Positions 37,001-62,891 of a stretch of DNA of 64,000 nucleotides are shown here, piece by piece; position 1 is the first letter of the stretch, and each line of letters opens with the position of its first letter. The stretch comes from Bugula neritina (Eukaryota > Animalia > Bryozoa), in contig OZ037768.1 in the NCBI GenBank assembly GCA_964035545.1, positions 4,496,741-4,560,740 of the forward strand, written 5' to 3'. Under the pieces are notes generated by a model that was not told the origin of the DNA, ran no database searches, and saw only the letters and a program-made list of their open reading frames with translations. The translations under genes and the position numbers were made by a program.

Positions 37001-40000
37001 AACTGATTAGCTGATGAGTTGTTTTCTTTATATACAGAAAGTCCGGCAGACACCACTACTACTACCACGCCTGCTCCTACTCAGTTGGTTACGGCTACAC
37101 ACAAAGGAACACTGACTCTAACTGTAGATGTCACTGCAGAGATGTCTACAACAGGCAGACTTGTTGTTTATTACATTAGGCCAGATGGAGAGGTCGTTGC
37201 AGATGGAATAGACTTCAAAGTAGAGGAATGCACCAACAATAAGGTGAGAATGTGTAATTACTGCTGAACGTGAACTCAATTTTTGTAGCATGTGTTTACT
37301 ATGTTTTTAGTTTCAACTATTGGCAAATGATAAAATATTGATATTTGTTTAAAGGCTGAGATGAGATTCAGTAAGGCTGAGGCTAGACCCGGAGAGCCAA
37401 TAGACATCAAGTTTACAGCGAGTCCAGACTCGTTGTGTAGTTATGGTATAGTAGACAAGAGTGTGTTCTTAGAGGGCGGAAACAACCAGCTTAGTCTGTC
37501 TACAGCCCTTAATCGTATACAAAGTTTGGCTCTCAGAGAATGGTCTGGGTGAGTTTTTATTGGATAGAGTTTTCGCCATAATAATTTACAATGTTAGCCT
37601 ACATGTTTTGTGTATGTTAATTTTTTCAATGCTTTATTTGAATTAAAAATATAGTTATTTTATATGCCACAACCTGGTGGCATATGAAGAGTATAGTGAT
37701 TATATAAAATATATTGTATTTGTATTGTTTTTAGAATATACGTCTCTCAAACTGCACACTGCGGTGATGTACCTAAAAATGGTGAGTCCAAAGCAACATT
37801 AACTATGCTGCGACATCTAATAACAATGGGCATTGTGGTTCTATTGTTTGAAATTTAAATTATTATTAGTTTTCAACGATATATTTTTATAGTATGGCTA
37901 TTATATTTTAGAATCTCACTATTTCTACTGGTCTGTGCCATACGATGATTCAAGTGAGGGTTTCAAGACAGCTGGGCTCTCCACAATGACTAATCTTAAT
38001 CTCAGAACAAGTCCTTGCAACCTCAAAAGCTACATACGCTGTATGTTATATTCTAGTTTATGTGTTGTTAGCTGAATATCTATGTCATTGAATGCTATTA
38101 AATTTATTACAGGTTGAAAATTGCTTTCCCTATTAGTTTAACATTTTTCTATTTTCAAAATTTTAGACCAGTTTAGGGCAAAATCAGCATCAAATGGAAA
38201 TTCAAACAGTTTTTCATCTGCTGGTGCACCTGGAGCACCTGGTTTTGATGGCAGTGAAGCTGTCTTGTCAAATACTGCTGCTAGAGATGGTGCCCCAGCA
38301 CCAGCCCCAGCGCCAGATGTAACTAAAACCGTGAGGACATTTTTCCCTGAAACATGGCTGTGGGACTTGGTAGATGTAAAGTGAGTTACTGGCTGGTGGT
38401 CAGTGTGGAGGGGTGCTTATCGCTTACGGTGTAGGGTGCTTATGTCATTTCCTGTATTTAGATTGGTACAGAACCTCAAGCCGCAGGTTCGACTCTCCTG
38501 AAGTTGCCATGATGCCAGCAGTAGCTTCGATGGGAGACCCAATCATGTCTCGAGCTGGAAGTATAATGGATGACGACTTCTCTTCTGAAGACCCTATTAC
38601 TCAAACTGTTAGAACATTTTTTCCTGAAACTTGGTTGTGGGATTTGTTAGATGTTGGGTGAGTGGGAAACTGCTCTGTCATATGGAGGGAAACTTGCTTT
38701 GCTCTTAATAATAACGTCTGCTTTCATGTTTGTAATTAGTAACAATTATTATATATGGTAATGGTTAATGACTAATTTCATCTGTATGCTTTGGTCAAGA
38801 TTGCTACTAGAGTCATTGCCCGTTGTAACTGCGCATTTACCAGATCTATGTAAGCAATTGCTAGATATCTAGGTTGTATTTTTGCTGAAAAGAAAAAATT
38901 TGATAAAATCATGCCGGTTCTAAAATACAGTAACATGTGTAACATATGTGGCTTATAATAAATAAAGACAGCAAAAAAGTGCTTTGCTTTCAAATTTTAC
39001 CAAGATTTTTAATGAAATTTATAAGCTTGAAGTTAATATTTAACAGGTTATAAATATGTAATTTACAGTTTTAAAGCAAAAAAAACCTAGCACTATTGAT
39101 AAATTAATATAAGACCTAGCATACAGGTGGTAACTAATAATTATCAAGTCAAGGGTGGAACTGGGCATAATATTTGTGTTGAATTACTATATACTAGCTT
39201 GTCTATTGTATGTTATACTACTATTATATTTACTTCAATAATTCTCTGTATCATCAAACTGTTTATCTCTGCTTGTGATTACTCACTATCTGACTTCAAG
39301 TGTTGGATCTGTTTGATTTCTAGAGCATCTGGTGAAGCTACGGTACCATCCACTGTGCCAGATACTATTACTGAGTGGGTTGGTAATGCTGTCTGTATGA
39401 GTGATGCTGACGGAATAGGAATATCTCCACCAGCTTCCTTGATAGCTTTCCAGCCTTTCTTTGTATCAATGAACTTACCGTATTCAGTTATTAGAGATGA
39501 ACAAGTACCAGTAGCTGTGACTGTCTCCAACTACCTCTCCAAGTGTATGGCTGTAAGTTAACAGAACATCTCAAGTTTTCACCTCATTGTTATGACAGCA
39601 GGTTGAAGCTACTTTCACACTGTAGGACTGTTTTAATCATCATTAACCACCTATAATGAATCATGTCTTTTCTGGTTCTCTACATACTTATGAACACAAC
39701 TGTTGGGATACGCTAATACCCCCCCCCCTTCCTCGCACCTAATCGCTAGGATTTGTGTCATAAAAACCATTGTTTTTGTTTAGTATATTGTTTATTTTTG
39801 TGGTGTGGTAAACTTATCAATTTTTGTATATCATACAGATTTAAAAAAACTTTTTGTTAGCATAAGTATATCACATTTGCAGGTGTCATTGAGTATAAAC
39901 CCATCTACAGAATATGACATCAAAGGCAAACCTTCAGGGTTCACCTGTGTATGTGGTCAAGATACTGCTACTAAGACTTTTACTATCATCATGAGAGAAA

Positions 40001-43000
40001 TTGGTGATGTCAACGTTTCTATTACTGTAAGTTTTATTTGTTTACTCCTATAACATACAGCAATCAGTTTATGTATGATGTTAATAACAGTGCTGTATGT
40101 TGTACATGTTGCATATATTATATATTAATTGTAATACTACTGTATACTATAAATGTGTGTGTATATAACGATCATAATATTTAGTCGTTACTGTATATAG
40201 TGTGTATGCAATTTCTATAAAATATTTACCTGCTGTATCTTAGGCTGAGGTTGTAAACAATCCCTCAATATGTTCCGGAGCTGAAATGTCTTCTCGTATC
40301 GGGATGAGTGACACTGTAATCAGACCTCTGATTGTTGAACCTGAAGGAGCTCCCAGAGAGTATACAATCAGTGACTTTGTCTGCATGACTAGACCAGATA
40401 CAGGTAAGTTGTCTGCATAAAGTATGGCAAAATAGAGTTGAGTTTGTCCACAATTCAGTTAATTGGTTTATTACGTTCACTACATTCAATATTGATAATA
40501 TTTATTTGTGAAGTTCTGAGAATTAAAAGTGAAAATATATTTTAGTGGTCAATCAAATATGATATTTAGTTTTTGACTATATATTTCTTTACTAATTGTT
40601 GTCATCTTTTAATTTTGAGAGTTAAGAAATATATCAGTAGTAGAGGGGTGTGACAGGTGTTGGTTTTGAGAGTATTCACCTGTAGTCTGAGCACTAATTA
40701 AATTCTGTAGTTATTTTTAAACTCTTTCTTTTAAGAGTTGATCATACTGATTAAGAGTTTAAAGTTTTTGAAGCATCAACTTGCAGCTATGAATAATTAT
40801 TTCTATATGTTATAGAATCTTCAAGTGGCTCAGTCACTGAGAACTACGCACTCTCTCTCCCTGACCCTGAAAATCTAGTTGAAGGTTCTGAGCGAGCATT
40901 TGTCAAAGTGGTTGGGGACGTCATGGGCCCTGCCCTCACCAACTTTGAGCGTTTATTGAGAATGCCATATGGCTGCGCTGAGCAGACTATGGTCTCGTTT
41001 GCTCCCAACATATTTGTACTCAAGTACCTTGAAGCTATCAATAAAGACAATGGGGATGTGAGAACCAAGGCTATTAGATACATGAAGTCAGGTATGTAGA
41101 TTCTATCAATTTACTAATGCTTCTTAAGTAAATTAAACCTTTATGAATAATCAGTCGCAATGTTCAGATTTCAAAGTATAATCCGTGTCAATATTTTTCA
41201 AGGATATCAAAGAGTGCTGACTTATGCACACAACGACCAGTCCTACAGCTCCTTCGGCACTTCTTCACCTGAAAAGCCAGGCAGCATGTGGCTGACCGCT
41301 TTCGTTGTCAAATGTTTCGGACTGGCACAGCCCTACATCTACATTGATAAATCAATCCTGTCTAAGAGTATAGATTTCTTTGTTGGACACCAGGATGACG
41401 ATGGCTGTTTCCCTCAGGTTTGTTGTTTTACTTTTGCTTGGACAGCTTTAGAAGTAACATAGAAGTTAGAGAAGAGAGTATGCTATACATGTTGACCCTG
41501 CTTATGCTAGACTATTGACAGCTGTTGTTATTGGTGTTGTAGATTGGTACAGTACACAACAAGTATATGCAAGGGGGATTTGGACAGTCTAGGAATAATA
41601 CTAACAAAGCAGCACTCACAGCATTTGTAGCCATTGCAATGCTAGAGTCAGGAGTAGAGAGAACAGAGCAGTCACTAGTCAATGCATTCAGATGTATTGA
41701 TCAACAGACATATGATGATGCCTACACACTATCTATAGTAGCCTATGCTTACTCCATATTTGATGATTCCACTGTGGGGGCGGTTAATACCTATCGCAGA
41801 CTGATGAGCATGGCTAAAGGTAAGTAAAGTGTCTAATTTATTTTGTAAGTTTTAGCTAAAGGTTAGTGCTGCTATTGAAAGTTTTATGGAAGTTTTTTCA
41901 TACTTGTAAACCTTAAAAATACAAACGCTAGCTTTTCTCTGTAAGTCAGGTTTTGCTAGTCAGCTATTAAATGTATTGGTTGTCATTGCAGTTATTCTTT
42001 CCATGTTCCAGTTGATGGATCTTTAACATATTGGAAAGCCAACGAGAACGAGCCAGAAGAGCCAGTAATACACTGGTGGTACTACAGGCCCAGATCTGCT
42101 GACACTGAGACCACAGCGTATGCCCTGCTTACCAAACTCAACACCAGACTCTCTGTCCAGCAGAAGATCTCTGAAGGTCTTCCTATAGTCAGATGGCTCT
42201 CCACGCAGAGAAACCCGTGGGGAGGGTTCGGATCTACCCAAGATACGGTCATTGGTCTACAGGCTTTATCTGAATACGCTTCACTCATCTATCACGATGG
42301 ACTTCAAGCTTCTATCGTAGTTTCGGAAACTGCAACAAATAACCAAGTTGCTACGTTTGAATTGAATGACGTCAACAGTTTTGTTGAATTTACTGAGAAA
42401 ATTCCAAGGGTTACAAATCTCACACTGAGCTCTACAGGCAAAGGATGTTTCCTTATGCAGGTTAGTCTTTCTCAGTGATAAGATGTCATTGAACTTTGTA
42501 CAAAACAAAAATTAGGAGTTTTCATTACATAATAAAAGTTGACCTTCTGATACAGCTTTCGCAATACCGTTTCAAATCTAGTAAACCTAAAGGTCAACTT
42601 TTTTTACCGCTAGCAATAGTCAACTTCCAGCTTAAGGAAATTGCCACAAACATACATATGGTGTTTACGATGTTGAATTCATTACATATATCGCATGTTG
42701 TTATTTTCACTGACAAGTATGTAAAATTTTTGCAGGAATATTTAATTCTTATAATGTTGTAGACAAATGTGAGGTACAACATAAACCAACCTGATAAATC
42801 TCGTCAGCCATTCCGCACAACCGCCAGAGTGTTCAGAAAGAGAGGGTCACCTGAAGCATGCAAGAACAGGCAACTCCGTATCTGCACCAAGTAAGTTCAG
42901 CTTTACTTGATTATTAATTGTGTGATTTTATTTATATTATGTTGTTAGTTATAGTATGTTAGTACAAGATGCACTACTAGGCCAACTCTGTGTATAGCAA

Positions 43001-46385: not shown

Positions 46386-49300
46386 ATGAGAGCAACTATG
46401 CTAGCTTTAGCTCTCTTTGTGCTGTGCTGTCTCTACACTCCAGCTCTCTCAATAGCGAAGTAAGTTTCTCTGCTAGTTTTTGCTTGTAATAATGATAAAT
46501 TAGTCAAGCAAATTATAAACATTAAACTAAAAGTGGTAGTATTTTTTAGATTAGCTTTTAAAATTAACATTCTATGCTAACTCATATGATAAATATTTAG
46601 TTATTGAAAAACACTTCTATAAGTGTAACTCGATTTAAATGCTTTTATATTAGCTGTTTCACTGTAGTCACAGTCATGCTTAAAATAAAAGCTATATACT
46701 CTTCACTCTTTTTATAGCTATAATCACAATCAAAACATTAGTAAAACTAAATATAATGATTGTTTAAAACATTGTTTACAATTATGAGAAAAAAACTCAC
46801 GAAAGCTTATAGTCACTATCCCTGTGAGAAACCCCTGATGAAAAGGGTTTTTGTTAAAGCGGCTAAGGACTTATTTAAATGAAGCACGGGAGCATATATG
46901 ATTGGATTCTCTTCCTAACATCACCAATGGCCTTTGTTGGGGTTTGAACCCATGACTTCATGTTAACTGGGCAAAAGCTTTAACCCCTAGACCACAGCTG
47001 CTCCATAATCATGAGAAAGATCTGTAGATTATTTAAATGCAATGTTAATTGAAGATCTAACCTTCTTTGCTTAATATTTGATGTGCAAAATATTTTTTGC
47101 TCTATAATGGTTCAATATTTGAACTTTTTATTTGTAAAGTTTTCTATAGGGAACATTGAAATCTTAAACTACAATTGTGTAATTCTCAACAAATTGTAAT
47201 TTATGTTTATTAATGCTAATATTTGTAGAAACCCGGGCTATCTCATTACGGTGCCTAACAGATGGATTGACAATAGACCAGAAACTGTGTGCATCAACCT
47301 CTACAACGCAACAGAACCCATCTTAGTAAACATCACAGTATCACCAAAGTCGTCATATACATATCGACAGTACCATCATGCACCAGCAGCTAATCAGGAA
47401 ATACTTGTCCACCAGTCTGTCATCATAACCAGTCATGGTAGGGGCACCTAAACAATTAACTACATGTTTGAAACAAAATGCTGCTGCTGCCGCCGCCGCT
47501 GCTTCGTAGAAATATCAGAACATTTTGTACAACACATGCATGTTGATGCTTATCAATAATAGACTTATTACACCTGCCTGATGTTTGTAGAGCAAGTTAA
47601 ATGCCTTTCACTGACAGTACCTGAATTTCCACGCCGTAAATACCCAAGACAACTCCGAATAGATGCTGTGGGTGTGAGTTTATCTGGAAATAGTACAGAG
47701 TTACACTTTCATGACTCTACTATGGTGGAGTACTTCAGGAAGCATTCTTATGGTTCCATCGAGTACCTTTCATTTGTGCAGACAGACAAATCAGTCTATT
47801 CACCAGGGGACCTAGGTATTTACCTTTTGCAACAGTTTGAAAATGTTTTTATTTTTATAGAACAAATAAACTGCCAAATATGGCTGGTCAAAAGGTATCA
47901 AATTCGTAAAAATTAAACTAAGCAAAACATAAAATAAAGCTTTAAAAACTTTTTTCAAATAAATTAAAGCAATTTATTAATCTTTATAAATATACGAAAC
48001 TTTTTCTATTATATTGTCTTTATTATTGATCAGAGCCTGCCATAAAAATTCTTTTGTCTTTGAATACTCAGGCTATATTAGCTCACTTTCTAGACTCTTA
48101 CTGCCTTTGGATTTTAAATGTATGTCTGGTTTCTGCACTTTTAGTGAGAATAAGAATCTTGACTATTGATACACTGCTAAAGCCTTCTATGGATATGGTA
48201 AGATTCACACATAACCTAAATGTCTATCTTCTGTTTACTTGTATATATATTTCTCTCTGTACGAGCAACAAAATCTTTCACCTTAAGTTGGGTAAACTGA
48301 GATTTTTTAAATTAGAAAAGCCTTTCCAAATATTATTACTTTTTTTATCATCAATATGATAATTAATGGCAATAAAGCCTTGTAGTTCATAAGTTAAGTA
48401 ATGATACTTAACTTACAGTCTCTGTTTTAGCAGAGTTCGTCTCATTTACTCGTATAATGGTAAAGCAAATGGCAAATGATAAATATGCATTACTTACAGA
48501 TAGAGAGTGTAACGATTAAAACTCCAAGCAGAGTGGTAGTTGAACGTTGGGCAAACCTCACTCTTACAAAAGGTATGATTCATGTGAGATGTTATGAAAA
48601 TGAAAATAATTTATTATATCAAATGTTATATAGCAATATAATATAGAGGCTAGTGTATTGAATGATTGTCTTTAATTAATTTTCTAGTTACAAATACTTA
48701 ATAAACTATGTTATATATTATATCATGTCTTACTTATTTATTTATTTATTTTGGTTCATTATACCAATTCTTGTCTGCGTACAATGTCAAGAGTGCTCAA
48801 AAATAACAATACTAAACAATAGGTGTACAATAAATTATTTCTTGAGATGTGTTATGTATTATGTAGAGCAGCAGTTATATAAAAGTTGGCATTTAGTTAT
48901 GCAGATATATCGTGTCGGAGCTCTATCATTAGCATAAATTTTCATAAAACTTTATAAAATGGTCAGGTCCATTATAAACTAAAAGTACAAATTATGTTAA
49001 TTTGAGTCAATCTGTCTCCTTAGACTTAACAATACTTACCCAAATAAGTTTTATAACTGCACAGCTTTGTAATATTATGTCATCATGTTTATAAAATAAT
49101 ATGTGGCAATTTTATTTATTTTGTTTATTAGGCCTTCTGCAACTTGAGTTTCAATTGAACAAAGAACCTGAATTGGGAAAATATAGAATCTCTATGGTTA
49201 GAAGTTCTACTATGGTAGACGAATATTTTGAAGTAAAAGAATATGGTACGTATTTCATATTTGAAGTCTATTGCTTATAATGAAAGAGTAGACCCTGAAT

Positions 49301-52076
49301 AATTAATTTTAGAAGGAACTAAAATGTAATATGTAGGCATCTCAACTCTAATACAGTGAAAATAACCTGGTGTTAGTAAAAACTGATTCACAAAATCATG
49401 ATTATTTTCAAATACTTAATTTCGTTATATCAAGCATCAAACGCACACATCTTAAGCTCTGATTCACAATATATGTGTGGGTCTGGAGCATTTTATAGCG
49501 AAATACCTTGATCAACCACCAAATAAATGCATGTAGAATGTGTGACTTTTGTTCAAAATTGAATAAATTTATTTGAATACAAAATTTCTAACTTTTATTT
49601 AAATAAAAACTTCATTTATCTGTCTAGGGCTTGTGTTTAGAAACTGTTGCCATGCAAGCCCCGCCTATTTCCTCAAGAGTTTCCTCATTTGGTGCCCGTA
49701 TATTCATGTTTCCTCTTCTTTGTAGTTCTACCTAAGTATGAGGTAACATTGACCACACCTTCTAAGTATCTTACTCTCCAGACCGAGGCAGTGACAGCCA
49801 AGTTGTGTGCCAGGTATTAACTTACTAATCATGTATTACATACGTAGTCCTATGGTCACGTGATTGGATTATAATTGTTACAAGCACTCTTTAACCACAT
49901 CAATAAAGCTCTCAATAGACTAAATATGCTTTAAGGCAGACCTTAAACTTAAACTGGAGTCAAAAAAGCTTATTTCATATTTTCAGATACATTTAATAGT
50001 CTTGCACTGAAGGAAGGTAAACAATGTCTACTTCAGTTGTGTACAATTAATATGATTTACTGCATTACTCAATACAATCTCATCAGATTTGCCAATCATG
50101 TTAAATCAAAATCTGCACTGTTTTAATCCATGGCAATGCTTGTTAAAGTGTCCCATTAAACAGCTGAGCCTTGAAAAAATACTCGTAGTTTTTGCTAAAC
50201 AACCACCCCATATTACCATTTTCAATATAAAGTTGTCGTTATATGGGTGCACTAATGGAGAAATTTCAAAAACTCAAGTTTTTAATTAATGCTGGATTAT
50301 TAGGTTATAGTGCGTTTCTAAAAATAAACATACTAAAGTAAAACACACACTGCGTGAGCAAAATTTTGCTGTAGTTTTATTTTTTATGTGATCTTTTGTT
50401 GAATAATTGATCAATTTTACTATTGTAAATAATACCTATTGCATGCATGACTGATTACTTACTGTACGGAAGTATTTCCTTATTTTGTAACACAACTTGG
50501 CACATGTTTTTATTTTAGGTATTTGGCTAATTTTTATATCAAAGCTTTATTATTTCATAAAGTTTTAAATTAATGCAAGGACCGCCATATAATATTTTAA
50601 AAAGGCAGTTTCATTCCTCAGCATGATGCTTACATGATGAAGTGTTTGTCTCAACTGTAATAGGTACTTAAATACTGCAGTACATTAACTTCCACTGCTA
50701 AGTAGTACCTAATCATTAGTATATGAATCAACTGTTGAAGATTTATTAACCACAAAAGCTAATAAAGAAATAACACTGAGCTCTTTCCATACACTGCCAG
50801 ATACTACCAGAATTATCTATTTCTTCTTATTAGGTGAAATCATGTTCAACCATAAAACTTTTAGATAATATTAAAACTATATGCTTTATATTAGCAATAC
50901 TAGCACATCAAAGTCCTTATGATATGCAATTTAAACTAGCGCAGGAAAAGGTTCGAAAGTCAATGCCGTTTTTCACTACCTTAGAATATAATTTAATGCT
51001 TTAATGCTAAGTTCAAGGATATTTTCATAAATTTCGTACTATAATTGGAAAAATTAATGGCAACAAATAACGTTAATGAAATACAGCTATATGACGGCCA
51101 TTTTCACATAGCGGCCAAGATAAATTATTAAAATAAAGACACAATTCACTGAGATGAAAGTATCAAACATATGTAGTTTTCGAACATTTAAACGTAAAAC
51201 TATTTTATTAATGAGTATTTTTCACATTAGACTAACTTTAGTTTTATTGATATATTTTGTAAAACAGGTACACATATGGTCAGCCAGTACGGGGCATTGC
51301 AGAGGCAACTGTTTGTCTAATGAAACCAGACTACTACCATCGGGGATATTACTATTATGATTCAACTCCCAAAGTGATAAAGTGCGTGCTTCTAGAAAAT
51401 CAGGTAAAAATCTTATTTGTATTTAATGTAGTCAGTGCAAGATCAAAGAAATTACTTATAAAATGTGTCTGTGCTGGGTTTAAGTTTTAATGAGAAGTCT
51501 TTACTTAATTTTCATGCAGCTTTTATTATCTTAAAAATATGTTAAAAAACAAGTTTGATGTTTCCTTTTCTTTGCTAATACAAAAGTTGGATTATTTTAC
51601 CATTGCATTAAATTATATGTTTCTAATTGCTTTTAAAATTTTTATTTTGCAGTTTTTATATTTGTACTGCCTGAAAGTTAGTTTATTTACCCAAATATGC
51701 TGATAATATTGCAATAAGCAAACAGATGCTGCCATGTCATCAGAAATCTGTCATGTTACATATAAACTAGGTTACAGTCTGAGGTTCACTTTGAACCAAT
51801 GAGATGATATGTTTTATAGCTGAATGATGGCTGCTACCAGATTAATGTGAGTCGTACTGATGTAGGATACCACCAGCACTACTATAGGCATAATTACTAC
51901 AGTCTCTCAGTACGTATTACGGGGCGTGTCAAAGAACAGGGGACAGGTGAGTGTTACTCTAAGTCTAGTTTAGAATGTTTAATGATTTCACTGTTTGTTC
52001 TTAATTATCATGTATAACATAACAGTTTATCAGTGAGTTTGAATTTATGATATATCCAATGATATAGGAGCCAAAG

Positions 52077-52116
<40 letters not shown>

Positions 52117-55100
52117 TATATATATATATATATAATTGTGTCATTCTTTGTGTAGGCGTATACATTGAGGCATCCAAAACCACTCTCTCCTTTAGGAGGG
52201 AAAATATTAAACTGCAATTACATGGGGCAGACAAATTCAAACTTGGTATACCCTATTACGCCAAGGTATGCATCAACTCTCAGCTACATCTAATATAATA
52301 TTTAATTGTTTTATAGTCTCTGGTTGTGAAATATTTCATTTTTATACTTAAGTGTAACCTTGAGTTGGAGCTTGAAAATCTATTTAGCAAGAAAATCTTT
52401 TAAATTTTTCAACGCTTTTTATAGTTTAAAACAGTTTCTAAAACTGTTGAAAGTTGGAGATTAATTGTAAAGCAAAAAACACACTTTAAATTTCATGCAC
52501 ATATAAGTGAATTGATTTTTGGCAAATTTATTTCATGATCATAAACAATATTTTATCTGAATAAACAGCTGACTGCTAAAAGATTAGATGGCAGTCCAGT
52601 AGAAAATGTGTTAGTTGACATCACCATCAACAATCTTCTGGGTAAAACCTTTACAACCAACAAGGATGGAGAAATCAATTTCAGTGTCACACCTCAGCTG
52701 AATGGAAACTCTGGAAACTTCAGACTGGAGGTAATACAATATTAAATGCATGTTTGCAGTCTGTTTTAATATTCTAGTTTGACTGCTTGAGAAGACTCTT
52801 CCAAGATTTTATTTGCCAGGTCTGGCAGATTATAAAGTTTCAGTGTTGAGAATATTTGGACAGCATCAAAACTACAATAGAGCTTTCATTAAATTCCTAA
52901 ATATTACAGAAACTTATGCAAGTTTATAGTTGCTACCCCTGTGAGAGCCCCTGATGGAGAGGGCTTTTTAGATTAAACTAGGGACTTGTTCATACGTGGC
53001 AATTATGACTGTATGCTCTTTCTAACGTCACCAATGGCCTTTACTGGGAATCGAACCTATGACTTTGTGTTTACGAAGCCAGCACTCTAACCTCTAGATC
53101 ATGGCTGCTCTCTTAAATATTACTGAAAGAACAAAAGTTAAATTTCAGGCTTCAGGGAGCACTAGAAGTAGAATCAGCAGCTCATTTGACACCCCAATAT
53201 CTGGAACATCTCTTTCGCCACAACAAAGATATTCGCCGTCTGGCTCCTTCATACAGATACAGCCTCTCGACAGAGCCCTGACTTGTGGCTCCGTGGTCAC
53301 CTTCCACATTCAGTATGCCTCAAATATTACTTTAGCAACTCTGCTACATTACCAGGTATGTATACACGCAGACTGCAGCTTGTGCTATTTGCGTGCAGTC
53401 CATTGGCCCAATGCTTTACTGTGTTGATTCAAATAAAACTTAGTTCGAGCTCTTGAACTTTTACCTCTCACTCTAAGTGAAAGTTTTGAATATAAATATG
53501 AATAAACTAAAGAGCCAAAGTTCTTCAAACAAATAAGTGAAGACTGTACAATATTTGATGATTGAATTTATTGATATAACATAATGTAACTGTACATATT
53601 TTGTATTTTATAGGTTGTTGGGCTGACAGACATTGTGCAAAGTGGCTCCGTACCAATCACTTTGAGCAATTCTTCAGAACACACCCGGAATGTTGACAAT
53701 GGTTGGACCTGCTATTACCGCTGCCTGGTTACCAATAGAGAAGAAATTAGTGAGTCAAACGATTGAGCACATTAATTTTAAAATAAGTTTTTACTTTTGT
53801 GGGAACAACTCCCAATATTACAGCTTTGTAAACTTCAATATGAGTGTTTTATAAGGGCTTCCACTCTCATCCTATCATTATAATATTTCTATTACAATTT
53901 CCAAATTAAAGGAAAAACTTTATGCAGCCAATAAAAATAAGCAACAAGTCAACATGTGAATATGCTATTTTTCCTGATATAATAAAATAAATGAAATCTA
54001 TCCCATATGTATGTAATTAATTAAAAGAAAATATTTCTTTACCTAATTACTCAATTTAGAAACTCTTCACACTAATATATTTACCACCTAGTAATTTAAC
54101 CAATTTGCTAAAAGTGAAATTAAGTATAAGAATAGTTTTCATATTATACTTATAAATAGTGCCTTTCAGTTTTATAAATATTCTTTTCCCCTAAACATTC
54201 ACCAGAGAAATTATAAAGAAACAGCGTAATGCCCTACTAACACCTGAGTGACCTATTAATGCAGATAGTACACTGGGAGTAAATCACACAACAATCCAAA
54301 GTCCTTTAGAGATGAACACTCAACAAGTGTTGGAGTTGAATGTAACAGTAACGCCAGAGATGTCTAGCAAAGCAAAGCTTGTTGTTTACTATATCAGACC
54401 AGATGGAGAGGTTGTTGCAGATGAAACAGACTTCCAAGTAGAACCTTGCACAAACAACGAGGTAACACACATTAATTCGTTGAGGTGACTTAAAAACTTT
54501 TGTTTACAATTATTGAATCAATTGAAAAGATCACATTAAAACATTTTATGGAAAATTGCCACCTCAACTGCTGGATATTATGTACTCATTATATGCCCGT
54601 GAATTGCTTAAAATCTATAAATAGTTTTGAAATTAAAATATTTTGCAGAGCATGGTAAAATACATTCTTTATTTTGCAGTTTTTCAATGCTGTGTAAGAA
54701 CAATTTTTCAATCAGCTGTGCCCAAAATATTACTATGTGAACTCTAATGCCATAATACTAATTTAGAATATAAAAATTTAAACACATTTATAGCCATTTT
54801 TATAAAGCCAAAAGAATATGCCAGAAAATCTATAATGCTACATGATAATACTCGATGCAAATGGTTTTATAAAGAATAAGTTGAGGTTTAGTAAGGCTTG
54901 TAGCATGTGTTTACTATATTTTCAGTTTCAGCTATTAGAAAATGATAAAATATTGTTATTTGTTTAAAGGCTGAGATGAGATTCAGTAAGGCTGAGGCTA
55001 GACCCGGAGAGCCAATAGACATCAAGTTTACAGCAAGTCCAGACTCTTTGTGTAGTTATGGTATAGTAGACAAGAGTGTGTTCTTAGAGGGTGGAAACAA

Positions 55101-58100
55101 CCAGCTTAGTCTGTCTACAGCCCTTAAACGTGTGCGAAATATTGGTTTATCAGAGTGGACAGGGTTAGTCATAAAATTATTATGATTGAGAAAACTGTTA
55201 GCTATGACTAGAATATAGAAAATTCTTGAATAAAAAATATTTTCATTTGTTATAAAACGCTAAAAAATGGAGTTGATACAAAAACTGGTTAAACTTATGC
55301 TAAAATCTATAAAGCAAGAATCTAAACTTTGTTTCATTAACTTAAAATTATATAACTTCATGCAGTTAAAATATTTATATACCACATAAATGCATGCCTC
55401 TTTTTAGGAATCCAATACAATCTACTGGAGAATTTTATTGTGGGCTCACTCCAACCAATGGTACGAGTTTAATTACATTTTCTTAAGTAACCTGAATGTG
55501 TACCTTTTAGCTTATTATTATTCTAAGCATATGTATATTATGTATATCTGAGCATTTTACGTATACTTGTAAGAAAACCTACTAAGATGTAAAACTGCCT
55601 TCATCTTGTAGATACTCACTACTTTAGTTGGGAGGTTAAAGAGGCACAGGATGCTGTAACTGAGTTTCACGAAGCAGGTCTTGTCACTATGAGTAACATC
55701 AGAGTGAAGACGAGACCGTGTGTTCTGTACGCCTCCCGGAGATGTTAGTATACTCTTTCTGTAATGCTATGCTTTAGCTCCCGTATTCATAGTTGGGTGT
55801 ACACTGTTAGCTTGTAAAAACCTGCTGTTATACATTAGTGTATTTTAACAACATGATTTGGAAATGTTTTAATTGTTTTCTAAAATTAATGATGTACACG
55901 TGTCTTTCAGCCTGTGGCGGTACACCTAGCAGATACTCTAGCCGAGGGCTGCAATGTAAAGTGCCAACACCTAGTAGCAGGAATTCGGGTAGCATACCAG
56001 GTTCACCAGGTAGAGATGGTTCACCAGGTGAGCGTGGTGAACCAGGTCAGCGTGGTGAACCAGGTGCACCTGGCCAAGATGGTGCACCTGGTGCTCGAGG
56101 TTTTGATGGGCAAGATGGTGCCCCAGGTGCCCCAGGCAGAGATGGTGCAGCTGGACAGCCAGGCCAGCAAGGTGCGTCAGGTCAGCGAAGCCGAGCAGGT
56201 CAGCGTGGCCAAGATGGTGCACCAGGCTCACCTGGCCGAGATGGTGCACCTGGCCAGGCTGGTGCTCCAGGTTCTCCTGGATCAGCTCAGGAAACAAACA
56301 CACTGAGGACATACTTCCCGGACACCTGGTTGTGGGACCTCATTGACATTCAGTGAGTCCTTCAACTTATTTTATATTCTATTCACCGTAATAGACTTTC
56401 TGTCTTTTAACAAATACAAATACAAGATTTTAATTTCATGAAATACATATAAGAAAAGGCTCCCTTTATAGAAAATACTGTTTTAGACCTTCTGGTGAAG
56501 CTACGGTACCATCCACTGTGCCAGGTACCATTACTGAGTGGGTTGGTAATGCTGTCTGTATGAGTGATGCTGACGGAATAGGAATATCTCCACCAGCTTC
56601 CTTGATAGCCTTCCAGCCTTTCTTTGTATCAATGAACTTACCGTATTCAGTTATTAGAGATGAACAAGTACCAGTAGCTGTGACTGTCTCCAACTACCTC
56701 TCCAAGTGTATGGCTGTAAGTTAACAGCACATCTCAGGTTTTCACTTCACTGTTATGGTAGCAGGTTGAAATAACCATATCAAATTGATTTCAAATATAA
56801 TAGCTGCAAATATATTTAATTATAACACCAATTATATGGCCATTAACTCACAAAAGCTTGGGTAAAGTATACATGTTTTGATGTAAGCAAAAAAAGACTG
56901 TCATGTCCTTACACATGCCTATAGAGAAAATAGGCAAATACATTTTGGTTTAAAAACTAAAATAGTTCTATTTTTGTAATATAATTATATAAGTTAATTG
57001 ATAACATACTTTGCAGGTGTCATTGAGTATAAACCCATCTTCAGAGTATGAAGTCAAAGGCAAACCTACAGGGTTCACCTGTGTATGTGGTCAAGATACT
57101 GCTACTAAGACTTTTACTATCATCATGAGAGAAATTGGTGACGTCAACGTTTCCATTACTGTAAGTTAGATTATTTGTTTACTCTTATAGCAATAATATA
57201 AATATTATAAATTTATTTATGCAGTAAATAATGATGTTGTATGCTGTACAGTGTACATAATGTAGAATATATAATATATTATATTATCAATTGTAATACT
57301 GTTATATACTATGAATGCTGTGTATATGTGCGTGTGTGTGCGTGTGTACGTGTGTGTGCGTGTGTGTGTGTGTGTATAATGATCATAATAATTAACTCAC
57401 AACTGTATAATTATAATGTGTATGCAATTTCTATAAAATATTTACCTGCTGTATCTTAGGCTGAGGTTGTAAACAATCCCTCGATATGTTCCGGAGCTGA
57501 AATGTCTTCTCGTATCGGGATGAGTGACACTGTAATCAGACCTCTGATTGTTGAACCTGAAGGAGCTCCCAGAGACTATACAATCAGTGACTTTGTCTGT
57601 ATGACTAGACCAGATACAGGTAAGTTGTCTGTATGACTAGACCAGATACAGGTAAGTTGTCTGCATGACTAGACCAGATACAGGTAAGTTGTCCGTATGA
57701 CTAGACTAGATACAGGTAAGTTGTCTGTATAACTAGACCAGATACAGGTAAGTTGTCTGCATGACTAGACCAGATACAGGTAAGTTGTCTGCATGACTAG
57801 ACCAGATACAGGTAAGTTGTCCGTATGACTAGACCAGATACAGGTAAGTTGTCTGTATAACTAGACCAGATACAGGTAAGTTGTCTGCATGACTAGACCA
57901 GATACAGGTAAGTTGTCTGTATGACTAGACCAGATACAGGTAAGTTGTCAGCTTAGAGGATGACAATGTTGAAATTTTATAGCCACGTCATTTTTGCTAG
58001 TCATTCCAATGTATGCTATATTTTTGTTGTAACTTAAACTCATGCTTTGTTTTAGTGTTTCTAATAAAATATCGAATTAATTGTACTGAATCACCAAAAA

Positions 58101-61100
58101 TTAATGATGACTTTTAAAGCACTGTTACTGGCGTTTGTATACTGAATCAAAGCTGTTTTAAATTTGACTAATTTTAAACTTAATTGAGAATCGTCATTTA
58201 AAAATAGATCTTTTTCAAGTAACCATATAGAATAATAAAATATAACTCATCTGCCATAAAATTAAGAAGTTGTGTTCCCAGATAAACTAGATTTTCTTTG
58301 CTTCCAGGTACTAATGCAGTGTACTCCACATATTCAAGCAATTACGAACTTCTTTTACCTGAGTCATTCGACATGGTTGATGGTTCTGAGCGAGCATTTG
58401 TCAAAGTGGTTGGGGACGTCATGGGACCAGCCCTCGCCAATTTCCAACACTTATTGAGAATGCCATATGGCTGTGCTGAGCAGACTATGGTCTCGTTTGC
58501 TCCCAACATATTTGTACTCAAGTACCTTGAAGCTATCAATAAAGACAATGGGGAAGTGAGAGCAAAGGCTATCAGATACATGAAATCAGGTACCTAGCTT
58601 GTCTACTAACTCATTTTCATGCAATAAAGTGTGTTTTCTGAAAAAAATTCTCTGATCCTATCAAAAAGAACAATTCAATATGTTATAAGTGACTACTAAA
58701 ACAAGTAGTTTTGTATACATATTGCATACTTTATTGTCAAAACTGGTAAAAATGTATCATAATAAAGTAGTTTTACCATATTTCTTTATTATGCCTTCAA
58801 ATAATTTATCTTTTGAACAATTTCAATTTGCTTGTTTTACCCTTGTGACTGAAAACCATTTCTAATGACAAGGTCAAGCTTCTATTATTCTATAAAAGTT
58901 AAAATTTTACTGTATTAATTGGTTGTACTTTCAGTAAAAAATGATTTTATTGACCTAATGAAAAATGACTGCAGCAAACTTCAAATTTTCTAATAAGTTG
59001 TAGTTTGCATCATACATAGCGTTACAATTAGGCTTGGTGCAGTTTTTCCTCAACAAACTGCAAGTTTCTTATTTTTAACAGCTTATTAATAAGATTGATG
59101 ACTTATCATTCCAGGGTACCAGAAAGTGCTGACGCATGCACACAGAGACCAGTCCTACAGCTCTTTTGGCACTTACCGGCCAAATTCACCAGGCAGCATG
59201 TGGCTGACGGCGTTTATAGTCAAATGTTTTGGATTGGCGCAGCCCTACATCTACATTGATAAATCAATCCTGTCTAAAAGCATAGATTTCTTTGTTAGAC
59301 ACCAGGATAACGATGGCTGTTTCCCTCAGGTTTGTTGCCTTATAAATAACTTCTATTGATCCATGCATAGAGAAAAACTTAATAGTTTATAGTCACTACC
59401 CCTGTGAGAAACCCTGCATGGTGGAAAGGTTTTTTTTGAAACGGGCTAAGGACTTATTGATATGTGGCATAGAAGCAATTACGACTGGATACTCTTTTTA
59501 AAGTCACCAATGGCCTTTGAACCCATGACTACAGGTTTACTACGCCAACGCTCTAACCCCTAGACCGCTGAGGTTTCTTAAAAATAGACCATCATATCTA
59601 TACTATAATATTCCATCACAATAATATAATACAGAGCTGAGCACTGTTATGCGTATTCATGTATATATCAGCCTGTCTTGTTGTAGATTGGTACAGTACA
59701 CAACAAGTATATGCAAGGGGGATTTGGACAGTCTAGGAATAATACTAACAAAGCAGCACTCACAGCATTTGTAGCCATTGCAATGCTAGAGTCAGGAGTA
59801 GAGAGAACAGAGCAGTCACTAGTTAATGCATTCAGATGTATTGATCAACAGACATATGATGATGCCTATACACTATCTATAGTAGCCTACGCTTACTCCA
59901 TATTTGATGATTCCACTGTGGGGGCGGTTATGTCCTATCGCAGACTGATGAGCATGGCTAAAGGTAAGTAAAGTGCCGAGTTTCTGTTGTAGGTTTCATG
60001 CAACTCTTGGATTAGTTTCTGAAATGGATCATTAAATTTCTACTTCGTATTGTCATCAAATTTACAATTTCTTTATATTTGTAATTAAAAAAGGTTTGCA
60101 AATTACATATAAAATTGGGGGTTTTTCAGAAAAAAAACATTTCATATGAGCAGAAAGCTTAAAACTTATTAAATTTACTCGGCATAAAAATAAGTCTGAT
60201 AAATTTAAAAGATATAGAAAAGTAAAAGTGTCACATGAACACGTTATGTAAGGTTGAATTATACTTTAAAGATGCACCACATTTCCGCTACTTTGTTTCC
60301 GTACACTGCAGAATATGTGTATAAACTTGCAGTACACAAAACATTATGTTGATTCAAATCAGTCAGTTTAAAGTTTTCCAAAGATGCAGAAAATGGCAAT
60401 AAGTCTTTAGACATATTTCACATCAGCCATACACCCTAAAAGATTTTTTAAAAATTTTCGAGGTAAGGAAAAGAAAAATATTTAGTAAATACAATTGTCG
60501 CTCATACTATAGCATTACTTTGTATTACTAAATGAAAAGCTAAATATGCATCAATATGTTATACAGTGAACGGACCACTCACTTATTGGAAAGCCAACGA
60601 GAACGAGCCAGAAGAACCAATAATACACTGGTGGTACTACAGACCCAGATCTGCTGATACTGAGACCACAGCGTATGCTCTGCTTACCAAACTCAACACT
60701 AGACTCTCTGTCCAGCAGAAGATCTCTGAAGGTCTTCCTATAGTCAGATGGCTCTCCACACAGAGAAACCCGTGGGGAGGGTTCGGATCTACCCAAGATA
60801 CGGTCATTGGTTTACAGGCTTTATCTGAATACGCTTCACTCATCTACCACGATGGACTTCAAGCTTCTATCGTAGTATCGGAAACTGCAACAAATAACCA
60901 AGTTGCTACGTTCGAATTGAATGATGTCAACAGTATCGTGGAATATACTGAGAAAATTCCAAGGGTTACAAATCTCACACTGAGCTCTACAGGCAAAGGG
61001 TGTTTTCTTATGCAGGTATTGAAGAGTCCATGTTACTGTATTGTATACATTATATCATATTGCCTTTAGCACCTTTTCATAACAACGTGGAAATGGTGCA

Positions 61101-62891
61101 GCTATACCCCCCTATTATATTTACATAAACATAACAATTCCTATTGCTTTTGAACTGATTGAAGTTAAATTTTATATTAGGACAAATTACTGTATATTTA
61201 CCAACATCCTGAAATATTATAATGAATATAAGCAGATCTTTCTTGACTCACTGATTGCAGGTGAATGTGAGATATAATATTAACAAGCCTGACAAAGATA
61301 GGCAAGCTTTTCACACTACATCAAGAGCTTTTAATAAAAGAGAGTCTACAAATGTCTGCAAAGGAAAGCAACTCCGAATATGTACCAAGTTAGTTATTGG
61401 TATATTGTGTACCTGTATAAAACTGCATATAAACTATTGTTTTGACATTAAATACATTCTAAAATTTATAAAATATAATTCTTTTCAAGAAATATTGATG
61501 GATAATAACCAACAAGAGATACGTAATTTAAAGAGTTAATTTACTGTATATTCGAATTGTATAGATATAAGCATATCATGTACTGAACTTGCATGGTGTT
61601 TTTGTTGAGGTTCTTGAATTTAAAAACCCAGGAAAAACATGCTATAGTATATTTACACTGCAGGTATACTGGAGAAGGCGGTGTGAGTAATATGGCAATA
61701 ATTGAAGTCAAGATGGTTTCTGGCTGGGCCGTGGACAAGGACAACCTCAAATCACTGGTTAAAAATAAGGAAACTGGTATAAGAAGATATGAAGTAGAAA
61801 AGTCAGGAACAATTCAGCTTTATTTTGACTCTGTAAGTGACTGATTTGTACTCATGTACTTATCTGTAGCGTGTAAGGAACTTTGCCTCTAGCCTTTGTA
61901 TAGCAGTTAGCCAATTGATGTCAAATGGAAATTGTTCATATTAATACTTTAATAATAATGCTGTAGCTGTTCCAAATTTCTTCCATTTCATTCTATTAAC
62001 AAATACACATATCTATTACGTTAATCTCTCTAAAGGATGAAAATAGGATGCTTTATGTTTTAGTTGGGAGCTGCTGAAAAATGTTTTTCTCTAAATATTA
62101 CACAACATACAGATGTGAAAAATGCTAAGCCAGCTGTTGTTACAACATATGACTACTATAAGACTGGTAAGTAGTACTAACTGAATATTGACAATAGATT
62201 ACATTTTACAATGATTAAAATACCTACATACAGTTGAGTACTTTGGCACTGTAATAAACTAGACTATTTATCCTTACCATCAACACATGCAGAAGTTGCT
62301 GCTTGGTTTATCAACTTGAACATTGCATCTTACAGTACAACCTATACAAGTAGAGCAGGTATTAGAGAATTATCTGCTCTATATCATCACCACAACAGTA
62401 TTGTTTAGAGCCAAACCTGTTTGAATACTGATGCAAAATATTATGTAGTGTGATTAAGTTAAAGTTAAAATATTGTTTTTCAACATGCACGTTTTCTATG
62501 AACTTTGAATAAAAAAATGTTTGCATTACGTAACTGGTGATATATTCAACATCTATGTTATACTTATTATAGAGTAAAAACTGAGTAGCATCTAAAGATT
62601 TATCACATCATGAAAAATAAGCAGTTTAATATAAAACTATATATTTATATGAGCAATAGGTCTGCAATTCCTTTTGTATTTAAACAAGTAAATAATGGTT
62701 TTGTAGAGTTAAGACAAGAGCTGGAGTATGAACTTCCTGCCTGTTATGAGATCAACAACTCAACATCAACCACAGTACCAGTGACTACAGCTTCAGTGAC
62801 TACAGTACCAGTGACTACAGTACCAGTGACTACAGTACCAGTGACCACTACTCAGAATCAAACTCCCACTTCTAACCAAATACAAGTCTAA
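46386..62891 (+). CDS. Alpha-2-macroglobulin-like thioester protein, copy 2, with a collagen-like bait region and Thr-rich tail
   Basis: Signal exon [22 protein letters not shown] (46386-46459) preceded by TATATAAAG at ~46336. Same exon series as copy 1: [45 protein letters not shown] (58469-58483), GGFGSTQDT. No frameshift found in the exons I traced; stop ends at 62891. Confidence 0.93.
46808..47003 (-). mobile_element. tRNA-derived SINE
   Basis: Reverse strand reads GCAGCTGTGGTCTAGGGGTTAAAGC...GGGTTCAAACCCC (A/B boxes) plus a body shared with the other copies. Confidence 0.85.
52080..52133. repeat. (AT)n microsatellite
   Basis: Visible. Confidence 0.95.
52925..53110 (-). mobile_element. 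tRNA-derived SINE
   Basis: Shares CCCTGTGAGA..CCCCTGATG..GGACTT..TCACCAATGGCCTTT..GAACC..CTCTAACC.CTAGA with the other copies. Confidence 0.85.
55911..56352 (+). CDS. A2M copy 2 bait exon containing a (Gly-X-Y)32 collagenous tract (56000-56287)
   Basis: Phase 1 to 2 exon ending in [15 protein letters not shown]; 21 GXY + SRA + 10 GXY. Confidence 0.92.
57325..57376. repeat. (TG)n/(TGCG) microsatellite
   Basis: Visible; the paralogous intron in copy 1 (~40153-40165) has only a short TG run. Confidence 0.9.
57593..57949 (+). repeat. 32-bp tandem array duplicating an exon end plus splice donor, 11 copies
   Basis: Unit TTGTCTGYATGACTAGACCAGATACAG|GTAAG; donors at 57620 + 32n up to 57940. Confidence 0.96.
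59388..59570 (-). mobile_element. tRNA-derived SINE (small internal deletion)
   Basis: Same family motifs (ATAGTCACTACCCCTGTGAGAAACCC...GGCTAAGGACTT...TCACCAATGGCCTTT...CTCTAACCCCTAGACC). Confidence 0.85.
62768..62850 (+). repeat. Coding 15-bp repeat encoding (TTVPV)n
   Basis: ACTACAGTACCAGTG units in the last exon of A2M copy 2. Confidence 0.88.

Follow-up and report, generated by a model that had tools for sequence, protein, structure and literature searches.

A collagen-like tract in the bait region of an alpha-2-macroglobulin-type gene of Bugula neritina

We analysed a stretch of 64,000 nucleotides from the genome of the bryozoan Bugula neritina (GenBank assembly GCA_964035545.1, contig OZ037768.1, positions 4,496,741 to 4,560,740), called the window in the following; positions are counted from its first letter. 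This 64-kb window contains two tandem genes of the alpha-2-macroglobulin/thioester-containing protein (A2M/TEP) family on the forward strand, copy 1 at approximately 31.2-43.6 kb and copy 2 at approximately 46.4-62.9 kb. The exon at the bait position of copy 2 encodes a long tract of collagen-type Gly-X-Y (GXY) triplets. The two features at the centre of this report are:

56000..56287, forward strand: collagen-like tract of 32 GXY triplets (21, SRA and 10); PF01391 at 68.1 bits, internal repeats of 9n nucleotides (nt).
55911..56352, forward strand: bait exon of 442 nt with a Ser/Arg-rich Cys-X13-Cys leader, (GXY)32 and a conserved strand of macroglobulin domain 6 (MG6); translation, RNA joints and single copy.

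Translation of the bait exon in the frame starting at 55913 yielded a leader of 29 residues, the 96-residue GXY tract and a closing segment of 21 residues. Gly starts 31 of the 32 triplets, and the single Gly-to-Ser break is the triplet SRA at 56189-56197. Pro occupies the Y position in 14 triplets and the X position in none. The initial annotation had described 96 GXY residues with one such break and Pro at Y, and translation confirmed both statements. Furthermore, the tract contains nine Arg, seven Asp, three Glu, no Lys and one Phe (in GFD), which is its sole hydrophobic residue. Among all six frames of the window, no other run of at least five GXY triplets was found, and the bait exon matched the Pfam family Collagen at 68.1 bits (E 5.4e-19), above the cut-off of 27.2 bits. 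The tract is therefore a real feature and not a chance pattern. Just upstream of it, the leader carries two Cys 13 residues apart (SCGG...LQCK at 55913-55963; Cys codons 55913-55915 and 55955-55957). This extra pair is missing from both bait exons of copy 1; it could close a small loop or form inter-chain bridges. A dibasic RR lies upstream of the pair, and no furin-type RXXR site is present there.

Pfam scans of copy 2, performed exon by exon, revealed the order MG3, MG4, A2M_BRD (two exons), Collagen, A2M, TED_complement (four exons) and A2M_recep. PF07703 (A2M_BRD) is followed by PF00207 (A2M) with the variable bait between them. The features of the gene around the bait exon, all on the forward strand, are as follows:

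46386..62888, forward strand: A2M/TEP gene copy 2; the span is approximate and reaches from the exon with the candidate signal peptide to the stop codon behind the Thr-rich tail; chain of open reading frame (ORF) blocks with Pfam matches.
46386..46459, forward strand: candidate first exon with a putative signal peptide, proposed from an ORF and a GT donor only.
54265..55163, forward strand: two exons (54265 to about 54461 and about 54949 to 55163), end of the A2M_BRD domain; PF07703 at 42.3 and 25.5 bits, RNA joints 53749>54265 and 55163>55408/9.
55408..55460, forward strand: mini-exon of 53 nt, absent from the ORF list and revealed by RNA contigs; joints 55163>55409 (run X4) and 55459>55611 cut at +1 (runs X1 and X4), AG/GT borders.
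55612..55743, forward strand: exon preceding the bait exon, frame continuing into the bait exon; RNA contigs in X1 and X4.
56300..56350, forward strand: conserved post-bait strand of 17 residues; aligns to 6tav_A 727-744.
56487..56715, forward strand: A2M domain exon (PF00207); 86.9 bits.
58469..58483, forward strand: thioester motif GCAEQ in the first TED exon; TED_complement at 65.5 bits.
59102..61066, forward strand: three further TED exon blocks, with limits of ORF blocks and not of splice sites; PF07678 at 77.3, 43.7 and 79.9 bits.
61587..61841, forward strand: exon block of the A2M receptor-binding domain; PF07677 at 48.4 bits.

At the N-terminus, MG3 (28.7 bits) and MG4 (28.3 bits) were each recognised on a single exon; the remaining exons of this part lack the length needed for scoring. 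The A2M_BRD, A2M, TED and A2M_recep matches and the thioester motif bear out the earlier assignment to the A2M family. The motif stands in the context PYGCAEQTM, with Ala where GCGEQ has Gly, and GCAEQ replaces the usual GCGEQ in both copies (58469-58483 and 40971-40985). In the exon-wise scans, no anaphylatoxin domain was detected at the bait position, where the exon matched Collagen only, and no C345C/NTR domain at the C-terminus, where the last exon matched no family. Judged by its domain content, copy 2 is an A2M-type thioester protein and not a C3, C4 or C5. Its last exon (about 62700-62888) continues beyond the conserved C-terminal Cys with a Thr/Pro/Val-rich repeat of approximately 45 residues (TTVPV four times), which looks like a mucin-type tail. 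Copy 1, in contrast, stops soon after this Cys, near 43.7 kb.

The location of the tract within the bait was defined by the strand that follows it. This strand aligned to residues 727-744 of human A2M (6tav_A, E 0.0013) and to the corresponding site in A2ML1, C3 and C5. As we take the human bait to comprise residues 690-728 in precursor numbering, the GXY tract ends where the human bait ends. Together with the order of the Pfam domains, this alignment confirmed the bait position claimed for the exon. The TRPC said to stand before the tract is present upstream, but it belongs to the preceding exon (55612-55743).

Inclusion of the bait exon in the mRNA was examined with contigs from four public runs (X1, X4, X14 and X15) placed on 53000-58900. 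Contigs of X15 span introns and represent DNA. Those of X1 and X4, which stem from two different studies, showed no depth in most introns and GT..AG joints. The joint 55743>55911 was present in contigs of both runs (133 letters on the shorter side), which continued through the GXY tract. On the other side of the exon, X1 displayed a joint 56349>56487 with ACA between, corresponding to the junction 56352>56487 plus one synonymous difference. A contig of X14, an oligo-dT biofilm metatranscriptome from a third study, begins with GACATACA, an 8-nt loose end of the same junction, and then follows exon 56487-56638. The exon borders 55911 and 56352 carry AG and GT, the upstream donor GT is located at 55744-45, and the reading frame remains open across all RNA-supported junctions. 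Thus, both predicted junctions of the exon were found in RNA; the upstream one had been placed at 55742>55911, and while the exon is joined to its upstream neighbour, the donor lies after 55743. None of the contigs examined joined 55743 to 56487, and skipping of a 442-nt exon would shift the frame, so that we regard the exon as constitutive, in an expressed gene. We are highly confident that the bait exon is part of the mRNA. Two groups of contigs were excluded as support for copy 2: those on 56515-58590 (depth 655 in X1), whose divergent end has the sequence of copy 1, and those producing very high depth over 55955-56151, which derive from other collagen transcripts. RNA joints 56715>57017 probably stem from copy 1, whose transcript is almost identical. 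We also considered a second, alternative bait exon for copy 2 and rejected it; the flanking introns of only 167 and 134 nt leave no room for it.

The neighbouring gene provided a view on the history of the tract. Copy 1 possesses two bait exons:

38167..38380, forward strand: copy 1 bait exon A, with GAPGAPGFDG (38223-38252) and RDGAPAPAPAP (38283-38315); length 1 mod 3, like the collagen-like exon of copy 2.
38462..38657, forward strand: copy 1 bait exon B, not collagen-like; length 1 mod 3.

The two exons are 81 nt apart, and both end in TVRTFFPETWLWDL, encoding the same conserved strand. Since each has a length of 1 mod 3 and use of both together breaks the frame, they are predicted to be mutually exclusive and must be used one at a time. 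The GAPGAPGFDG and RDGAPAPAPAP segments of exon A aligned with the copy 2 tract at the protein and the DNA level, with GAPGA(P/R)GFDG and RDGAP in common. The Phe of GFD is kept in exon A as well, and the GXY remnants of copy 1 are confined to this exon. As judged from these alignments, the tract shares ancestry with exon A. The two genes are mosaic: many 3′ exons and several bait-proximal ones (54898-61017 against 37283-42462) are 92-96% identical, including intron edges, while the bait exons gave no mutual blastn match and neither did the N-terminal exons upstream of approximately 54.3 kb. This pattern suggests gene conversion between the copies that spared the bait. A third TEP locus on another chromosome (G000:C2:17632565-17636717, minus strand) has two tandem bait exons, which are not collagenous and end in VRK(V/A)FPESWLWSN.

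The bait exon of copy 2 occurs once in the 216-Mb assembly. The best other genomic DNA matches to the tract reached 65-75% over long stretches and lie in giant collagen genes 12.5 Mb downstream (G000:C4:17049053-17078611). Recent capture of an exon from a collagen gene was rejected as its source, since beyond the one exact copy the genome offers only these 65-75% matches. Within the tract, Tandem Repeats Finder detected repeats with periods of 9, 18, 27, 36 and 45 nt. RNA contigs differed from the reference by approximately 2-6% in copy 2-specific exons; in the tract, gaps summing to 9 nt were observed near 56066-56076 in X1, X4 and X14, and a further 9 nt at 56214 in X4. Because the exon is present only once in the assembly, these contigs represent alleles or sibling lineages and not paralogues. 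All of them retain the GXY register, which is a weak sign of selection, as slippage on a 9-nt repeat by itself favours 9-nt steps. The non-Gly positions of the repeat units are approximately 40% identical, whereas Gly is kept almost throughout, a pattern more easily reconciled with constraint on the periodicity than with a slippage product of very recent origin. As exon A of copy 1 still keeps a short GXY remnant, the tract probably arose in place by 9-nt steps from a short seed of this kind.

What such a bait might do can be considered against experimental work on human A2M. In this protein family, the bait is exposed and protease-sensitive, and its cleavage triggers a conformational change and the thioester (PMC7016707). 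Human A2M with its whole bait replaced by 13 Gly-Gly-Ser triplets folds, tetramerises and works; it was inert to 12 proteases until a site was added, and the inserted site decided which protease triggered it (PMC8267569). One Arg in the otherwise inert bait conferred trypsin sensitivity, and a generic Pro-X-X-hydrophobic motif conferred sensitivity to matrix metalloproteinases (MMPs). Moreover, Lys in the bait becomes autoconjugated by the thioester, and bait length and cut position alter trapping efficiency (PMC8267569). Given that a Gly-Gly-Ser bait is tolerated and that bait Lys is autoconjugated, a Lys-free, Gly-rich tract should be workable as a bait.

From the features of the exon we infer, with a modest leaning in its favour, that the tract forms a single, flexible, gelatin-like bait chain in the intact protein. 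A bait of approximately 40 residues would thereby be replaced by approximately 137, consisting of the leader with its two extra Cys followed by the GXY triplets, and this GXY chain would loop out of domain MG6. As in other A2Ms, cleavage at any point of the chain would set off the conformational change, and the GCAEQ thioester would become exposed. One class of cutting enzymes would be those that cleave Y-Gly bonds in unwound collagen, namely bacterial M9-type collagenases and gelatinases. M9 collagenases and gelatinases cut before Gly, and the tract offers 31 Y-Gly bonds. Arg-specific serine or cysteine proteases would constitute another class. With nine Arg in the tract, and one being sufficient in human A2M, trypsin-like and other Arg-specific proteases should trigger copy 2. 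Enzymes that need a hydrophobic residue at P1′ would encounter one site only, and the lack of X-Pro together with the single hydrophobic residue points to few typical MMP sites. The initial annotation had regarded the protein as a decoy specialised for collagenolytic proteases. As an exclusive property this was not borne out, given the Arg residues and the scarcity of MMP sites. The idea of a collagen-mimic trap as such is plausible from the sequence.

It is conceivable, albeit unlikely in our estimation, that the tract is a neutral low-complexity expansion, produced by slippage on the 9-nt repeat, which serves as an ordinary bait of broad range and has no collagen-related role. Under this view, nearly any flexible sequence would be accepted in a bait region. 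Slippage would leave behind such a series of repeat periods, and also the 9-nt steps by which RNA contigs from three studies differ in length from the reference. Human A2M tolerates a bait of Gly-Gly-Ser only (PMC8267569), and hypervariable, frequently duplicated bait exons occur in the B. neritina genome as well as in other invertebrates (PMC7016707). On the other hand, the low identity of the non-Gly positions marks the repeats as old, and yet Gly persists in all triplets except one and Pro stands strictly at Y. The homologous exon of copy 1 shows what a tract looks like after loss of the GXY periodicity. Conservation of the register in alleles diverged by about 6% points in the same direction, but this argument is weak for the reason given above.

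Several points weigh against a flexible bait chain of the proposed length and history. The length of approximately 137 residues, compared to approximately 39 in human, depends on an N-terminal bait limit which we presume to lie after ...VKTRPC in exon 55612-55743, by comparison with the human sequence; a PDB search for this limit with exon 55612-55743 gave no match. A loop of 137 residues, by analogy with the effect of bait length and cut position in human A2M, might be cut outside the cage and result in poor trapping. The history may have run in either direction, as expansion of a seed in copy 2 or as loss of a longer tract in copy 1. Finally, when residues 14-130 of the exon peptide were modelled in three copies, in isolation from the rest of the protein, they formed a parallel, in-register bundle over residues 27-124, which would be compatible with a structural collagen helix. 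Here, the tracts of three subunits would trimerise, perhaps after an upstream cut as in two-chain C3-type proteins, and form either an oligomer resembling a collectin or C1q bouquet or a mimic of native collagen that only true collagenases open. The model scored 0.49 compared to 0.00 for the best control. In the calibration of the tool, 21 of 30 proteins solved as pairs attained this mark and none of 23 solved as single chains did; three copies lie outside this calibration. At least 95% of contacts were shared by the three runs, and the partner pLDDT (predicted local distance difference test) was at least 77. Pro at 14 of the 32 Y positions is potentially hydroxylatable, and the leader contributes the two extra Cys missing in copy 1 with the dibasic RR ahead of them. 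However, the modelling tool may have reproduced solved collagen helices that it had memorised, and the A2M context is absent from the model. Pfam scans of the exon and its neighbours revealed no coiled-coil, C1q, NC1 or other nucleation domain; the tract is flanked by the leader and the MG6 strand. A helix of 96 residues would measure about 27 nm by our own arithmetic (about 0.29 nm per residue), and to rejoin the same MG6 domain an uncut chain would have about 37 residues at one end of the tract and 4 at the other. The absence of X-Pro and of a furin-type RXXR site as well as the Gly-to-Ser break are further obstacles, and known A2Ms are monomers, dimers or tetramers. A helix would be feasible only with the chain cut upstream, as in C3. 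We consider a structural helix improbable, and a true triple helix across three macroglobulin subunits, intact or cut at the upstream dibasic site as in C3, distinctly improbable. If it did exist, the trap would be sprung only by collagenases that unwind triple helices, or the protein would resemble a bouquet of thioester heads in the manner of collectins; no member of the A2M/TEP superfamily is known to have a quaternary structure of either kind. Very improbable, in our view, is the proposal that collagen-binding microbial adhesins or host receptors recognise the tract as their ligand, which would make copy 2 an opsonin-like TEP instead of an inhibitor. Most collagen receptors require a triple helix, Lys for binding of the MASP/C1r type is lacking, and the data indicate no partner. 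In its favour, copy 2 has its own Thr/Pro/Val-rich tail, and relatives carry functional modules at the homologous position, namely an anaphylatoxin in C3 and an LDLa domain in MCR (PMC7016707).

Comparison of copy 2 with known systems placed the collagen-like bait in context. Human A2M (PDB 6tav, 7o7l) corresponds to copy 2 in domain order, post-bait strand, CxEQ thioester, receptor-binding domain and Lys-free bait. It differs in having about 39 non-repetitive bait residues, where copy 2 has about 137 with 96 of them in GXY, and in the motif GCGEQ in place of GCAEQ. Collectins, C1q and ficolins are likewise secreted innate-immune proteins with a collagen-like tract; there, the tract is the stalk beside a trimerising neck or head, whereas that of copy 2 is an internal loop of a globular domain and has no neighbour of this type. 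Ovostatin, the macroglobulin of hen egg white, is an A2M family member biased to metalloproteinases including collagenase. It was reportedly studied with collagenase and thermolysin by Nagase and Harris in 1983, and it is not known to have a collagenous bait. The engineered 'tabula rasa' A2M demonstrates that a repetitive, Gly-rich bait can work and that inserted residues set the protease, but it is artificial, comprises 32-39 residues and is not collagen-like, while the bait of copy 2 is natural and 2.5 times longer (PMC8267569). BgTEP2, BgA2M, CfTEP and Drosophila TEP2 have alternative bait exons at the same hypervariable position, and none of the described invertebrate TEP/A2M bait exons was reported to be collagen-like (PMC7016707). 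Copy 1 and the third TEP locus follow this invertebrate arrangement with two tandem bait exons each, in contrast to the single one of copy 2. The anaphylatoxin of C3, C4 and C5 and the LDLa module of MCR demonstrate that the homologous site accepts whole foreign modules (PMC7016707). Those modules are folded, Cys-rich domains, whereas copy 2 contains a repeat tract that was probably grown in place and not shuffled in.

The initial annotation knew of no described A2M with a collagenous bait, and none emerged from the full-text literature or from searches with the exon peptide. In the full-text literature, no macroglobulin or TEP with a collagen-like or Gly-X-Y bait was found; co-occurrence of the terms elsewhere was unrelated by title and abstract. 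The sequence searches used the single exon, so that their length window and the abundance of collagen matches could have masked a relative of full length. HMMER, run exhaustively with the exon peptide on 1.84 billion representatives in a library that does not contain the gene's own product, returned collagen-like matches only. Seven of these matches ran past the GXY tract and carried Collagen but no A2M-family domain, one of them together with RT_RNaseH_2. A word-indexed search among proteins of 80-255 residues gave 98 matches, all with PF01391 and none with an A2M domain, and a feature search of the ESM Atlas recovered collagen fragments only. Among JGI metagenome contigs, a pattern including YFPDTWLW hit 19 loci. 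The five that were translated, among them all three with matches that seemed to reach the YFPDTWLW motif, proved to be ordinary multi-exon collagen genes. Whole modules at this position of the superfamily are already known; for a collagen-type bait, these searches brought up no description.

In macroglobulin traps, the bait acts as the switch that sets specificity, and it is now being rewritten by engineers in search of selective inhibitors. If the proposed reading holds, copy 2 would be a natural case in which the bait was turned into a 96-residue collagen mimic. It would then show how innate immunity, or the remodelling of the matrix, can be directed against collagen-degrading enzymes in a sessile marine animal, and it would provide a template for A2M designs directed at collagenases or gelatinases. 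A trap tuned to collagen-cutting enzymes is a directly testable idea. Furthermore, the locus documents how a non-collagen gene probably gained an internal collagen-like sequence through expansion in steps of 9 nt, and the adjacent paralogue preserves a decayed or ancestral state of the tract.

Apart from the bait, copy 2 contains an intronic minisatellite at 57657-57966, recognised by nine overlapping blastn matches approximately 32 nt apart. Its unit matches a sequence of copy 1 at 40377-40418 that comprises the end of an exon and the start of the following intron.

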